This document shows, piece after piece, positions 5,401-13,156 of a stretch of DNA of 64,000 bases. Both the position numbers and the translations under genes were made by a program. Source of the DNA: Blepharisma stoltei ATCC 30299 (Eukaryota; Protista; Ciliophora); NCBI GenBank assembly GCA_965603825.1, contig CBFDEM010000017.1, forward strand, positions 372,001 to 436,000, read 5' to 3'. Every line of letters starts with the position of its first letter. Position 1 is the first letter of the stretch. Under the pieces are notes generated by a model, which did no database searches, had not been told where the DNA came from, and saw only the letters and a program-made list of their open reading frames with translations.

Positions 5401-6602
5401 CAAAAATTAAATTCTCATATAACAAAAATCTTATTTTTCTCGAACCTCTTCATTTTTCAGTAAATTTTGAATAAATCCAAAATTTCTATTTTATTTTCAT
5501 TAAATTTATCAATAAGTAAATGCCTGAATTTTCTTTCAAAGTCAAACTGGTTTTTAGGGATTTCACAGTTTACATTTAATTTTTTGTGTCTATAGATGAC
5601 AATCCATATTGTTGAATAAATAACAAATGGCTGCAAAAATATATTAAAAACCAAAATTATTTCTGAATTATCTAAAGTTTCTCCCAAAATAAAAATTAAT
5701 AAAGTTGTCGAAAACATCATCAATTTGCAAGACTGGATTCAATTTTCAATTGAATTGTAGTATTGGACCACTTTAATAGATTTTAAAGCCAAATATAAAG
5801 ACAGAATAAATACTAAACTTTGATATTGAATAATATTTTCATTTCCAAAAGAAATATATAAAATACATAAAATAATATAAAAAAGTTTAACCTGCAAATC
5901 TAATTTTGATGATGACCTTGATCTTATATTCTTTTTTAGATGAGAATGCTTCATATCGCATAAAAACAATTCTGAAAAAATCAAAATGATTATAAAAATA
6001 AAAATCAAAAATATTGAAATAATTACGGTTGGGGAGCTAAATTTATTATCTTGTATTCTAATTCCATATTCTTCTATATAGTTTGATTTATTTACGTAAT
6101 ATTTCAACCCTATCATTATAAGCTTAGAGCTTGGAATTATTCCAATTGTTACAAAAATAAATAGGAGAGCTTTAGGTAAAAATGTCAAAAAATATTGAGG
6201 CTTTTTATTTTTATGGTAGAGGCAACCAAGAATTAGTAAAATTGCAAATTCTGTTGCTATTAAAGTTAAAGTTCCATTCAAACAGTAATCAATTAACCCT
6301 AATTCAGCACAAATTGAGTCATAGCTAGCATACCCTAAAAATTTTCATATATTCTCATAGCCTTCTCATTCTGATATATTGGCATTTGGATATCAAGTCA
6401 ATTTAATTAATTGTAAGGTTAAAATCGTATTCGTCGCTATTTCATAAGCTACTTGGCTTTTCAGTAGATTTTTAGGCTTGTATTTTTGATTTATAAGATT
6501 TTCAAATAGGTTATAAAAAAAATTTCTAAATTGCTCAAGCCGTACTTGCTTTGATAAAATTTCATGTGCGTCTAAATTTGCTTTTCCTCACATAGCAGAC
6601 AT
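2433..6602 (-). CDS. TmcB/TmcC-like membrane PAS-domain protein, copy B (~1379 aa)
   Basis: ATG at 6602 (MSAMWGKAN...). All sub-ORFs are in one frame via TGA=Trp. 15-nt introns at 3969-3983 (GTAAATATTATTCAG, no stop) and 3561-3575 (GTAATTATTATTTAG). PAS core GIISYINETAAQILKTSIVNAKGSPLNNFIPSPFDIIHEKSM. Stop TAG at 2433. Confidence 0.85.
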
Positions 6603-6835: not shown

Positions 6836-9800
6836 CTACTCAGCTTCCGTCAACAAGATACTTTGAAGCATTGAAAGTTTGTTAAGTTTTGCTGCTTGGG
6901 CTATAAAAAAGGGTCAATAATAAAAGAAAAACAAAAATAAGACAGCCATTGTATAAAAAACTGTGGCATTGATGATAATATTCAATTTGTCTTTTATAAT
7001 ATTTTTAGAATCATGATCAGCAAGTAAAAACTCTTGTAAAATTTCATCTTGGGCTTCTGTAATTTTACTATTATATCGTGAATGCTCTTTAGTTGTAAAC
7101 TTTGTATTTTTAAGACTGTAAATTTCATCAACAACATCATTAGCTAAAGGATAACTTCCTTGATCTAAAGCATTTGTATCTGATTCTGTTGTTTCATAAA
7201 TCCTGTCTATTAACTCTTGGGACATCAAATTACAAAAATTTTTATTTCTTAATTCTTTCGTTTTTATCATAAATTCAGTATAAGTATTTTCTACCATTTT
7301 TTGAGGATTTGGAAAGGCATATGAAGTTTTAAATAAAGTATTCATATATGGTAAATAAGCTTCTCTTGAAAAAATACTTAATCTTGATATTAAAACTCTT
7401 CTAAGATTGAAGTTATTTAATAGCGAAGGCCGATTTATCATCATTTCTTCGCAGTCTTTGTAGATGTAGAAGTAGACTAAAAAATAATATGAAGCTGAGA
7501 TAATAAAAAAGGCTAAAATTCGTCAAGCATATGATAGGTGCAAAGAAGAGTGGGCTTTACGAATGCTATGAGGATGTTTTAAAATTTCAGCATTTGTCTC
7601 AGTATTGTAATCTGTCCCATGGATTAACATTAATCTATCAATTGAAGAATTTCTTAGTTTTACCATTCCCAGCTGACCATTATTTAGCATAAAATTTCAA
7701 AATCCATCATGAGATTTTGATACTGAAAGGACAAATGCAAAAATAATCAGAGCCAAAATTGCAAGTATAATAAGTCCAACTGCAATTAGTGCTTGTATAT
7801 TTTCTCCTGTAGTTTTCACCCTATTTATTTCACAGTCAACAATTTCATGAGTCGTCCTATTTGTATAGTCAAATGCAAATGAAAGACCATTTAAATATAA
7901 AAACTTTGTTTGATAAGCAGAATTCTATTTAATAATAATAATAATTTAACGGTTATCGCCCTCTAGAGGACCAATATTTTCCAAATTCTTCTTCTTTTTT
8001 CTTCCCCTTCAACTCCAATTATTTCCATCTAAAAAATTCTGTCCATACCTCACATTTTCGGCTTTTTTCTTCAAATTCAATTCTACTTCATTTAAGACTT
8101 GATATCTTCGTCCTAAACTCCTTTCATAATTTTCTACCCCAATATTATGTATATCCAAAATCTTGTTGCATTCATATCTCTTTTTTCTTCAATTTTTCTT
8201 TCCCCATGACTTGCATGCAAATTCCATTTTATTTCATCCCTTCCCTTTTCGCGGGCAAATTTTTTTGCTTGTAATCGACTCAACGCCTAAATTCCAACAC
8301 TTAGCATTTTCTAGGGATCACCTCCTTCAGAATCCTTACTCTCTGGTGTACCTTGGCCTTCAGCTTTATCTCCAGCATTCCCAACCTCAGTGTTGTCCTT
8401 GATTCCACTTTCATCACTTGAGGTTTGAACTATTTCCACAGGCCGAGTGCCTGTTGTTGCATAAAGCGGCGTAGTTGTCTCACTATCAAGCACTTCTTCA
8501 GTTTGGTTCCAAGCCCAGGATACAAATCTTCCTCATATTTCATCTTCATCTTCTTCATCATAATCATCATGGTCATCGTAGTTGCTTCAGTAATCCTCCT
8601 CAGATTCATAGTCAGAAAAGAACTCTTCTGGTGGCATCAAGTATTCTTCTGCATTGAGAGCAATATCTGTACCATTTAGCCATTCTTCCTCGTTCTCTGA
8701 CATGCCGCCAAACTCCATGACTTTCCAATGCTGCTTCATCATCCTTGATACCTGGCTAGAAGGCAGTAATTCCCTTCCCTTCATGTACAGCTTTAAGTAA
8801 AGTCTTGTTTTAAAGGTACTTTACCCAGTACTTTCTTACCCTAAATAGAGATTACTGTGTCAATAAATCTCGAAATAAAATTGTACAGATTATCATAATC
8901 AATAGCTGGTTTACCACTATCAAAATTTCATAAAGGAACTATTTGGTCGTCAATAATTTCAGAAGCTTTGCAATATGTTCATAATTCAAAATCAGCTAAA
9001 ATGCTGTCTCTTATAATGTCTATTTCATCAAGAATGTTACTAAAATCTAATGCAAAACCCTCCATCTGAGCTGTCGTATAAATGGAATTTTTTGATGCTT
9101 TGTCTAATGTTCGAATAGACTCTGTTGCCGCTTCAAGGTAATATAGCAGATTTCCAAGATGCCCAAGAGAGCTCATTCTTGAAGTTCGAGATACATCTGA
9201 AATTATATAAGCTAGCATAGCTATCATAGTAATGATAACTGAAATCATCTATTTAGTTTTTACCATAATAAACAGCACCCACTGAAGCACAGAAATTTTC
9301 CTTTTCGACTGCAATAATAATCTTTTGGCTTGATTTGAGCCTTTACTATTGCTGTTTCTTGAGGAGGACAGCTTTGAAGGGTTTTCTATTTGGCTTTCTA
9401 TCTTTTTATCACAATCTATATTCGGAAATTTATTAGTAGTAAGAACAGCTTCTTTTTCAAAGTTTTTAGGGGAAAATGGGGCATTTGTTGAGAAAACGTT
9501 TTTAGGTGACAAAAATCCATTTGATTGATCATTTTTTGCTTCATTTTGTGAGTGCTCATAAAACTCTAATTGATTTTCATCCTCTTTAAGTTTCCACTGC
9601 TTGATTTCTTTTTCATCATTTATTACAAGCAGATAACAAAATCTTGTATTTCTTATCGTTTTTTGGATATGAACAAATGCAATTTCTTTTGAAAAAAAAT
9701 TTAGAATCAAGGGCTCGTAGTTTAACATTCTATTTGTGTTTAGATAAGGAGCTATATCTGAAAGTGGCTTTCCTGAAGCGATTTTAATTGGATTGTTTAT

Positions 9801-11891
9801 GAAGTAACAGAATAATTCTGAATGATTAAGGATAATGTTTTCTGGGGATAGCAAAGCGATTTGTCGTTTTGAAGAAACTGGTTTAAATGAAACTAAAAAG
9901 TAAGAATTGTTGTGAAAAGTTGTCAATTTTATCATAATATTGCATTCTATCAAGAAGCCACTATTTGATTTAAAAAATAAAGATTTATGGGAACAAATTT
10001 CTGTTGTTATGCAATCTTGTAAAAAAATTTTCATTGATTTTCCATGTAAAACGTCAAAAGGGGAAGGAATGAAAGTTGTGAAAGGTGTCCCATTAGCATT
10101 TATTAGGGAAGTTTTTAAGATTTGTGCCCCAGTTTCATTTATATAAGAAATTATGCCAAAAGATTCTTCAGAGCAAGAAATAAGCATAACCCCAATTGTT
10201 TTCCCATAATTTTCTAGACTTTGATATTCATTTCGTTGACTATAAAAATTTAATCCATCTTTTTTTTTATTTATTAGGCTTGCTTCTTCAATGTTTCCTG
10301 CGATATTTTCAAGAAAGCTTGAATAATGTTCATAAGCCTCAATATTTTTGTGTATTTCAATCAATTTCTTATATCCTTCTGTAATTTTATTGATTTTATT
10401 CGCAGCTTTAATAGCTAAATGCATTAGCTTAGATATATTTGGCTTTCTTAAACTAAATTCATTATGCAAATCTACAATTGTATTGCACAATTTTTCGTCT
10501 TTAAATTTTATCATACGAAACTCTTGCAAAAATTCTAAAAAGTTAACATCAGAAAACTGTTGGCATTTTTTGCTCTCAAGTTTGTTAAATATTTTCCATT
10601 CTTGAATATCTCCTTCAAATGAATATTTTGCTTTAAAAATTTTTGATAATTTTACTCTTGCTAGTCTTTCATTTTTTACTATAGAATTGCAAAAATTAAA
10701 TTCCCACACAGCAAAAATTTTATTTTTCTTAAATTGACTCATTTTTCAATATTTTTTGAATAAATTCAAAGTTTCTATTTTATCTTCTCTAAATTTATCT
10801 ATTAGCAAATGTCTGTATTTTCTTTCAAATTCAAATTGATTTCTCGGTATTTCATGGCTTTCTTTTAATATTTTATGCCTATAAATCACAAATTTTATTG
10901 TAAAATATATAACTATTGGTTGCAAAATGATATTAAAAATCAAAATAATTTCCGAATTATCTAGAACTTCTCCAAAAAGAAAAATAAACAGAGCTGTGGC
11001 AATAATCATCATATTGCATGACTGAATTCAGTTTCCAACTACATTATAATATTGTAAAATAAAAATAGATTTTATAGCTAAGCACAAAGACAGCAAAAAC
11101 ATCAAAATTTGATGCAGAATAATATGTTCACTTCCAAAAGAAATATATGAAGTACATAAAATGATATAAAATAGCTTTATCTGCAAATCTAATTCTGACG
11201 AAGACCTTGATTTAATATTTTTTTTGTGATGAGAATGCTTCATATCGCATGAGAAAATTTCATAAGACATCAAAATAAAACAAAGCAATATAAGCGAAAA
11301 AATTGATAATGTTGTACTTATTTCATTAATTTCATTGGGTTCTATTCTAATTCCATATTCTCTTATATAAGTAGATCCAATTATGTAATATTTTAATGTA
11401 ACAATAAGAAGCATGAAACTTGGAATTATTCCAACTATAGTAAAAATAAATAGAATAATTTTGGGTAAAAATGTCACAAAATATGGAAGCTTTTTATTTG
11501 TGTAAGTGGAGAAGCCAAGAAGAAGTAAAAATACAAATTCTATAGCTAGTAAAATAAAAGTTGTAAGCCGGCAGTAGCTCATCAGCCCTGATTCTGCACA
11601 AATTGAGTCGTAACTAATATATCCTAACACTTTTCATATACTTCTGTAACTTTCCCATTCAGAAAGGCTGGAATCTGGATATCACATCAACCTAATTGCT
11701 TGCAAGGCCAAAACTATGTTTACTGAAATTTCATAGACTGCTTGGCTCTTAGACTTCGTGTTTAGGCTATATTTTTGCTTAAAATGTTTCGCAAAAAGCT
11801 TGAAAAAAAATTTTTTGTATTGGCCCGATTGTAGTGACTGGGATAAAATTTCATAGGTATTAAAGATTTCTTTTGTCCATGCAGCAGGCAT
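6836..11891 (-). CDS. TmcB/TmcC-like membrane PAS-domain protein, copy C (~1381 aa once the 880-bp insertion 7914-8793 is removed)
   Basis: Closest paralog of copy B. Introns at 9249-9263 and 8841-8855. No stop or frameshift was seen other than the insertion. Joining 8794 to 7913 gives ...KQDFTYQTKFLYLNG, collinear with copy B KQDFTSHTKFLYLNG. Stop TAG at 6836. Confidence 0.8.
7946..8335 (-). pseudogene. Insertion-borne basic/Trp-rich ORF fragment ending at TAA directly before the (ATT)5 tail
   Basis: Stop-free for 129 codons with UGA=Trp (LENAKCWNLG...MEFACKSWGKKNWRKKRYEC...GPLEGDNR*). It overlaps the upstream fragment by 25 nt in a shifted frame, so the two were probably one ORF broken by a single frameshift. 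Confidence 0.5.
8311..8793 (-). pseudogene. Insertion-borne acidic ORF fragment (open from the 5' junction, ~160 codons)
   Basis: ORF-track 8587-8784 and 8311-8493 are in the same frame and join through TGA=Trp (...EEDYWSNYDDHDDYDEEDEDEIWGRFVSWAWNQTEEVLDSE...). No family recognised. Confidence 0.55.
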
Positions 11892-13156
11892 AATATTTTA
11901 AAGGTAAAAATTATATGGACACCAATTATGATCAACATTCTTAAATGGAACTTTTTTGAGATTAGCTATTAAAGAAATTAACAATTTTTTATCTAGAGAG
12001 AATTCAAAATATAAATTTAACAATCTTAATCTCTTCTTAATATTAACTAAAAGATAGATGGTGTAACTGTATTGATAGCGCTGTCACCAAAGCATCAATG
12101 CTTTGTAACGTCCTTGATTCAGTCTGATAGAATAAGATAGTGATTCACCAGCGAGAATCCCCGGATATATTTCTTCTTCTCTAGCATTTTGTGTATCATA
12201 AATTTAACAATTATGACAATCAGAAGAATATCAAAGTTTCAATTAATATGGACAGATTATTAAAAATTAACTAGCAATAACTAATAGATTGCCTCTTAAA
12301 ATGTAAGAATATTGCAATTTTAAAAGATCCAATTTTGAATTAATTAGTTTCTAAATAAAATAGATCCAAATTATTTATCTTATTTAGAAAAAAAACTTAA
12401 GATTTGAATAACTTTTTTGGCTAAAATTTTCTCAGATTCATTTGTATTTCGTTCAAAAAAATGTTTCTTAAATCAATTATTTTTATGCTACTGATAATGA
12501 AGCAGGCTTTCACATGGAGATGAGCAAGGTTTTCTGAAGGCATAGGAAGGTACTCCTAAATTGCTTTATTTTTGCCAAAAAATTAATGTCAATTAAAGCC
12601 AATTTGTGATGTTAAAGGCACTCTCGAAAATAATAGTCCAATAAGTCCTAGCAAATTATAATTGTTTGGCCTACTTTTGGATATTGCTATTTCATTGAAA
12701 GATCTGTCTTCCAATAATAGTGTCGTGGTGGGCGGCCTTATAGTGGCTTAAATTTTAGCAGACCAATTTTATACCTATTTTATTGCCTCCCCTAAAGCAA
12801 GCTATAGTCTGCCAGAAGACCTCTTAAAATTTTTCATTACAGCTTGAATTCACGTTAGGGCTTCGACACTTACTTCGACCACTTTATCAGATGATTTGAT
12901 TTGGATCAGAATTTCTTAAAATTTATTTTCGGAAACAAAATAATTTCAAAACTAGTAAGCTATAAAAAGAAGAAGACTGAAAAATTAAGGTTTAAGCGTG
13001 TTAAAAGCAATGTTTTTAAAAAACTAGAAATAAATCAAATATATGAATTTTTATTGATTTAAATAATTAATTATTATTAAAATAATCCATACCCATAAGA
13101 TGCTTAATTTAACATCAAAATTGATATAAATTTTATAACAAAATTATTACTTAAAA

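Follow-up and report, generated by a model that had tools for sequence, protein, structure and literature searches.

LINE/SINE pairs of the stringent type (e.g., UnaL2/UnaSINE1) share a 3′ end together with a simple-repeat tail, and the Drosophila I factor is a (TAA)n-tailed element. Insertions of 5′-truncated L1 can show microhomology at the junction as well as 3′ transduction. Among ciliates, TA-bound IESs are derived from transposons with a TA-containing TSD, as is the case for the Tc1/mariner-derived IESs of Paramecium (model in Seah et al. 2023, PMC9942856). For Blepharisma stoltei ATCC 30299, the somatic (MAC) assembly has been described by Singh et al. 2023 (PMC9942806), and retroelements have been reported from the somatic genome, some of them partly excised or missing from a fraction of the population (Seah et al. 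2023, PMC9942856). The published families include the RT/APE-bearing LINEs rnd-1_family-273, -276 and rnd-4_family-193, and the expression of RT genes in this organism has been reported as negligible (PMC9942856, PMC9942806).

The insert described here interrupts a gene of this somatic genome and is a copy of a ~950-bp repeat; it is the product of an ordinary mechanism, of a kind already published for B. stoltei. It was likely a very recent retrotransposition that put a 5′-truncated copy of this non-autonomous non-LTR element into an exon of the gene, termed copy C. Like the LINE repeats of B. stoltei (PMC9942856, PMC9942806), the ~950-bp element has young copies of high identity in the MAC and also in IESs; unlike the RT/APE-bearing LINEs, it is devoid of RT and chimeric with a fragment of a host gene. 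The available parts of the two B. stoltei papers (PMC9942856, PMC9942806) do not describe tails, TSDs or an intragenic copy of such an element, and the supplement of Seah et al. 2023 (PMC9942856) does not mention contig 17, TSDs or truncation.

Host gene and layout of the insert

The genome searched is the somatic (MAC) assembly GCA_965603825.1 of B. stoltei ATCC 30299 (41.46 Mb, 64 contigs, of which C4, C17, C47, C60, etc. are named below), the telomeres of which are CCCTAACA repeats. The window, i.e., the whole stretch of DNA analysed, is 64,000 nt long (C17:372001-436000), and positions without a contig name refer to it. UGA is read as Trp in B. stoltei, and translation with TGA=Trp makes the open frames of the window several-fold longer. 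At least seven paralogs, which are large membrane-protein genes, follow one another in tandem on the minus strand at a spacing of ~5.6 kb; copy C is one of them and has a Pfam match to TPR_TmcB (E 5.9e-10). The gene and its insert comprise the following features:

6839-7913, minus strand: C-terminal (downstream) part of copy C, ~360 codons, now behind a stop codon
7914-7917, minus strand: second 4-nt junction repeat, TAAG on the plus strand and CTTA in the sense of the gene
7918-7930, minus strand: 13 nt, AAATAGAATTCTG, between the (ATT)5 tail and the CTTA repeat
7931-7945, minus strand: (ATT)5 tail, directly after the TAA stop (7946-7948) of the family's ORF
7946-8796, minus strand: body of a 5′-truncated retroelement copy, without the first ~72 nt of full-length copies
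8793-8795, minus strand: in-frame TAA made at the 5′ junction; the host frame ends after ...KQDFT
8794-8810, minus strand: exon 17-mer AAACAAGACTTTACTTA (K Q D F T plus TA), the last 4 nt of which (CTTA) are the exact junction repeat, TAAG on the plus strand at 8794-8797
8794-11897, minus strand: N-terminal (upstream) part of copy C, ~1,030 codons, with open frames under TGA=Trp and the TPR_TmcB match
8841-8855, minus strand: predicted 15-nt intron of copy C, GTAA...TAG, closed by an in-frame TAG
9249-9263, minus strand: 15-nt intron of copy C, spliced in RNA (the RNA contig of run X8 omits 15 letters at 9249)

The insert amounts to 880 bp (7914-8793) within an exon of copy C and has a GC content of 38%, as compared to 25-28% in the flanks. 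Read in the sense of the gene, it ends in (ATT)5 followed by AAATAGAATTCTGCTTA (7914-7930), while at its 5′ junction the three nucleotides at 8794-8796 (TTA in sense) are common to element body and target and constitute a microhomology. An earlier note on this DNA, made from its letters alone, had described several of these traits, and all its statements on the sequence were borne out: the in-frame TAA after KQDFT that results from the insert (8793-8795, in the frame of the gene), the ORF of the insert, open from the 5′ junction (in our translation with TGA=Trp, over 169 codons), the (ATT)5 tail at 7931-7945, and the TA-containing direct repeats that bound the element (TAAG at 7914-7917 and 8794-8797). 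Deletion of 880 bp from 7914 was said to restore frame and paralog spacing, which holds in comparison to paralog A and has its counterpart in the exact empty junction of a related strain (see below). A 1-nt deletion near 8316 truncates the ORF remnant of the window copy; all other copies have an extra A behind 8316.

Apart from the insert, copy C is intact, as had likewise been stated. With TGA=Trp, it is open over 6839-7924 and 9252-11897, and between 8794 and 9248 it is open except for two TGA codons and one TAG (8841-8843); this lone TAG closes the 15-nt mini-intron at 8841-8855, at a position where paralog A likewise contains a stop. The predicted mini-intron is located 31 nt from the exon 17-mer (8810 to 8841) and 48 nt from the base with which the insert ends at its 5′ junction (8793 to 8841). 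It is kept in the sole RNA contig covering it, from which the intron at 9249-9263 is spliced out.

The element family and a candidate partner LINE

Copies of the ~950-bp repeat in the MAC assembly other than that of the window are found on C47 (99.8% identical), C60 (99.4%), C33 (96%) and C4 (93%); a relative on C35 (71-75%) is an old internal fragment only. A further copy (98.6%) is present in CAJZBQ010000002.1 of GCA_914767885.1. This record matches contig C2 at 99-100% but with extra blocks, and the left flank of its element copy is absent from the MAC assembly, which identifies GCA_914767885.1 as a MAC+IES assembly and places the copy in germline-only DNA (inside an IES). Two blocks of the same record, of ~148 and ~205 bp (L073:5201-5349 and 5476-5682, where L073 is an excerpt of CAJZBQ010000002.1), are missing from C2:386869-387936 and represent ordinary IESs beside a THAP4 haem-binding gene.

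Full-length copies measure ~950 bp, with an ATG 10 nt from the start, 301 codons including five TGA, and a TAA directly before the tail. Pfam searches with the three longest ORF pieces of the element gave no match and no RT, and homologs of the ORF were unnamed B. stoltei proteins, with none outside B. stoltei; an RT and/or endonuclease of its own, as expected of an autonomous LINE, is not encoded by the ~950-bp element. Of its first ~100 nt, 93 nt match a gene on C22 (~196550-196655) with 94.6% identity, albeit in another frame, and this gene has a weak Bac_globin match (E 0.017, below Pfam's cut-off). Hence, the element is chimeric and has captured a fragment of a globin-like host gene. A derivation of its N-terminus from an RT, as a weak BLASTP match to a LINE ORF (E 0.015) might have implied, was rejected because the stretch in question is the DNA with 94.6% identity to the globin-like gene.

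In an alignment of five copies, those on C47 and C60 are full length at the 5′ end, as is the germline-only copy; the window copy lacks 72 nt, that on C4 ~95 nt and that on C33 ~180 nt. The 3′ end is common to all copies, with tails ranging from (ATT)3 to (ATT)8 and an (AAT)7 tail in the IES copy. Directly behind the tail, perfect TSDs of 15 bp (TTATATAAATGTCTC) and of 13-15 bp (AATTTGAGAAATATA) flank the C47 copy and the germline-only (IES) copy, respectively; the C60 copy has a TSD of ~16 bp with one indel. Common 3′ end, varied 5′ truncation, tails and TSDs are the marks of target-primed reverse transcription in a non-LTR family, in line with the kind of retro-insertion that the earlier note had proposed.

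Several copies have neighbourhoods of their own. The (AAT)7 tail of the germline-only copy lies at L073:3905-3930, and this variant recurs in a DNA contig of run X5. The 93% copy (C4:163482-164311) resides inside a transcribed gene, where an RNA contig and the annotated protein P0002 both span the transition from host flank to element. The C60 copy (C60:~649811-650770) is located ~26 nt from a telomere, and a copy of LINE family B (C11:212-3976) abuts a telomere directly; the two copies are unrelated, and telomeres may be added at sites where retroelements have their 3′ ends.

A LINE with an RVT_1 domain (C46:408002-409792; E 5e-33) ends in ...GGGCGTGATAAAACGTAAA(ATT)6, its last ~25 nt being similar to the end of the ~950-bp element. 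Its 5′-truncated copies are 90-99% identical, and one of them (C58) has a perfect 14-bp TSD. Judged from these sequence features, the C46 LINE or a germline relative probably supplies the enzyme to the ~950-bp element, the similarity between the two 3′ ends being short. Small hairpins upstream of both tails, that of the element and that of the LINE, were no better than those of shuffled sequence. LINE families A and B were dismissed as partners, given that their tails are (TAATCC)n or lacking and that they have no similarity to the element. Family A, with six copies of 99.3-99.97% identity and (TAATCC)n-like tails of differing length, is another recently active LINE.

As with UnaL2/UnaSINE1, a short non-autonomous element and an RT-bearing LINE here have their final ~25 nt and an (ATT)n tail in common, along with 5′ truncation and TSDs. 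Unlike SINEs of the UnaSINE1 type, the ~950-bp element has a 301-codon ORF and is not pol III-derived, and its putative partnership with a LINE is deduced from a short similarity only.

Age of the insertion and its state in two strains

Compared to the C47 copy with its perfect TSD, the window copy has 2 private changes in ~868 bp, namely one substitution and one 1-nt deletion, the latter of which truncates the ORF. An empty site is provided by run X12, which bears the same species label and comes from the same study as the reference runs, is 2.3-4.3% diverged in the window and probably represents strain HT-IV. A 983-nt contig of X12 skips exactly 7914-8793, joining 7913 to 8794 with the 4 letters TAAG ambiguous in placement, and thereby confirms that an exact empty form exists, as had been predicted. 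No differences are listed for it in 7854-7913 or 8794-8828; the empty site of X12 already has CAA and GAC, and, therefore, the synonymous exon states that were taken as derived predate the insertion.

From 2 changes in the ~868-bp body and an empty site in a strain ~3% diverged, it follows that the insertion is young; it is very recent. The earlier note had regarded it as old and had read the intact gene as a sign of purifying selection after the insertion and, consequently, of removal of the insert. Neither view can be upheld, considering the 99.8% body identity to C47 and the empty site with CAA and GAC in X12: in a young insertion the argument from intactness is without force, because the rest of copy C has had no time to decay, which says nothing on selection.

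The claim that the insert is removed from the gene is also at odds with the RNA. A contig of RNA run X8 (735 nt) extends from 8767, inside the insert, to 9516, crosses the filled 5′ junction and has the intron at 9249 removed; being spliced and crossing the junction, it demonstrates that spliced copy C transcripts carry the insert and its stop codon, without efficient removal at the DNA or RNA level. RNA depth is alike on both sides of the insert (4.7 vs 5.4), and the RNA contigs at 7466-7829 are comparable in depth to those upstream. Since the RNA contig equals the filled 5′ junction exactly, an assembly artefact is unlikely. A spliceosomal intron was rejected as well, given that none of the 5 possible cut registers yields GT..AG on the minus strand and that the RNA contig keeps the junction.

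In DNA runs X1 and X5 of the reference strain, no contig crosses either filled junction, which leaves the assembly itself and the RNA as the evidence for a filled form in DNA; contigs with the empty junction are likewise absent from both runs. The flank contigs end exactly at 7917 (X5) and begin exactly at 8794 (X1, X5). Were the filled form alone present in the sample, the contigs of one flank should extend to ~7959 and those of the other should begin at 8767, which is indeed where the RNA contig starts. Each of the two 30-mers flanking the insert occurs only once in the assembly, and these exact ends are, therefore, most simply explained by branching towards an empty form whose flanks are identical; the reference strain may thus contain a minor empty form. 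The listed contigs account for the whole of the bin depths. Neither junction piece is, therefore, contained in the contig sets, and the depths yield no proportion of filled to empty. Elsewhere in copy C, the contig depth of run X5 falls to 23-27 at 10342-11391, as compared to 72-88 on either side, and run X1 is even there.

Cultured for >50 years, ATCC 30299 shows virtually no heterozygosity (PMC9942806); a minor empty form would, thus, reflect partial excision, somatic insertion or culture polymorphism. The same alternatives were left ambiguous for other retroelement loci by Seah et al. 2023 (PMC9942856).

The locus resembles TA-bound ciliate IESs in its TA-containing direct repeats at both ends (TAAG, with the exact junction of X12 as the frame-restoring empty form). 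It differs from them in that the insert is found in the somatic assembly and in spliced RNA, where an IES would be absent or rare, in that it is a retroelement and not a DNA transposon, and in that excision is only a candidate process.

The 17-mers, rival explanations and biological meaning

The two 17-mers (7914-7930 and 8794-8810; AAATAGAATTCTGCTTA and AAACAAGACTTTACTTA on the minus strand) agree at 11/17 positions. By direct comparison, all 6 differences are transitions and the terminal TAAG is identical, just as reported before. The purine/pyrimidine pattern of the 13 nt is expected 1.9 times in the window, counted as 128,000 positions, or at ~1.5e-5 for one given place, and the in-register likeness of the 17-mers exceeds chance. 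Only TAAG is exactly repeated at the window copy, the 17-nt repeat carrying 6 transitions, in comparison to family TSDs of 13-16 bp. The former interpretation of this repeat as a TSD that decayed with time does not stand, with 6 changes in 17 nt as opposed to 2 in ~868 bp of body. The 13 nt at 7918-7930 match the DNA after the TSD of the C60 copy, 3 nt before the C60 telomere, in 12/13 letters with one gap, a match that comes at the price of a 1-nt insertion and a deletion of 11 nt. Elsewhere in the MAC assembly, the junction of tail and 13 nt has only near matches at chance level. The reading favoured here is that the 13 nt stem from the 3′ end of a read-through template RNA and not from an old target duplication; an RNA origin fits the transitions-only 17-nt repeat, in register and of about the usual TSD length, loosely. 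Alternatively, a TSD may have been changed at the moment of integration.

Like truncated L1, the window copy is dead on arrival, shows a TTA microhomology and has extra non-element nucleotides behind its tail that resemble the flank of another copy. What L1 3′ transduction would not lead one to expect is that the 13 nt resemble the target as well, differing from it by transitions alone; and, unlike L1, the window copy is without an exact TSD of normal length.

In the account by recent retrotransposition, the chimeric element, which begins with ~100 nt of globin-like sequence, has a 301-codon ORF with UGA=Trp and ends in a short hairpin-like 3′ end and (ATT)n, was probably reverse-transcribed by the enzyme of a resident LINE whose tail is identical and whose 3′ end is similar. 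A read-through template RNA ending in the 13 nt may have paired loosely with the similar target, with the 5′ junction being formed via the 3-nt microhomology TTA. TAAG alone (CTTA in sense) would then be truly duplicated, the 13 nt behind the tail having been created at insertion. Finally, the insert is transcribed with the gene from the somatic genome, and owing to the TAA after ...KQDFT copy C now encodes a protein minus its last ~360 residues.

Two other accounts of how the junction came about have to be weighed. It is very unlikely that the insertion is old, with a 17-bp TSD that decayed and an insert that has been tolerated via IES excision at the TA of this TSD and is here partly retained. 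Such a history would explain why the 17-mers are related beyond chance, in register and at the TSD length usual for the family, why the 3′ copy of the 17-mer still agrees with paralog A at two sites (G at position 6 and T at position 9), and why the empty junction is exact at TAAG. However, the contrast between 17-mers and body would require gene conversion of the entire body up to both ends, and the diverged strain, which has CAA/GAC in the exon plus an empty site, and the spliced transcript holding the insert speak against it. Endonuclease-independent end-joining, by which a double-strand break would have captured element cDNA or RNA, in place of classical target-primed reverse transcription at staggered nicks, appears rather improbable; the exact duplication of only 0-4 bp, the 3-nt microhomology at the 5′ junction and the 13 extra nt at the 3′ junction would suit it, but the tail is complete and the transitions-only 17-nt repeat sits at the normal place of a TSD.

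The two remaining accounts concern what became of a young insertion, and both draw on the contig breaks at 7917 and 8794. That the insertion is unfixed, having arisen somatically (in the MAC) or within a fraction of the old culture, with two forms sorting out, is a serious possibility without being the probable one. Over 50 years of culture (PMC9942806) would have offered the occasion, and the only 2 private changes are within reach of reverse-transcriptase error alone; the negligible retroelement gene expression (PMC9942856, PMC9942806) argues to the contrary. It is unlikely that the young insertion is already partly excised in somatic development, by a PiggyBac-type excisase acting at the TA in TAAG. 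Here, the contig ends in X1 and X5, set against an RNA contig start at 8767 that fits the filled form alone, the unique 30-mers that make an empty-form branch the simplest cause, the virtual homozygosity of the strain, and the partial excision reported for further retroelement loci (Seah et al. 2023, PMC9942856) would be in favour; yet, no empty-junction contig was seen in X1 or X5, contigs give no proportions, and a somatic or culture polymorphism would look identical.

Very recent retrotransposition remains the likely origin of the insert, and the seemingly "selected" intact gene around it is explained by youth, not by obligatory excision. The copy C locus is suited to the published question of partial excision versus lack of fixation, offering unique flanks, an exact empty junction, an empty related strain and a transcript read-out. 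If the insert were indeed a nascent IES, a retroelement only a few mutations old would be cut exactly in a fraction of the somatic chromosomes, with filled and empty forms in a near-homozygous clone, and retroelements, not only DNA transposons, could enter the excision pathway at once. For B. stoltei as a whole, the undescribed small, chimeric, LINE-dependent element, together with (ATT)n-tailed LINE copies that have perfect TSDs, suggests that retrotransposition is ongoing.
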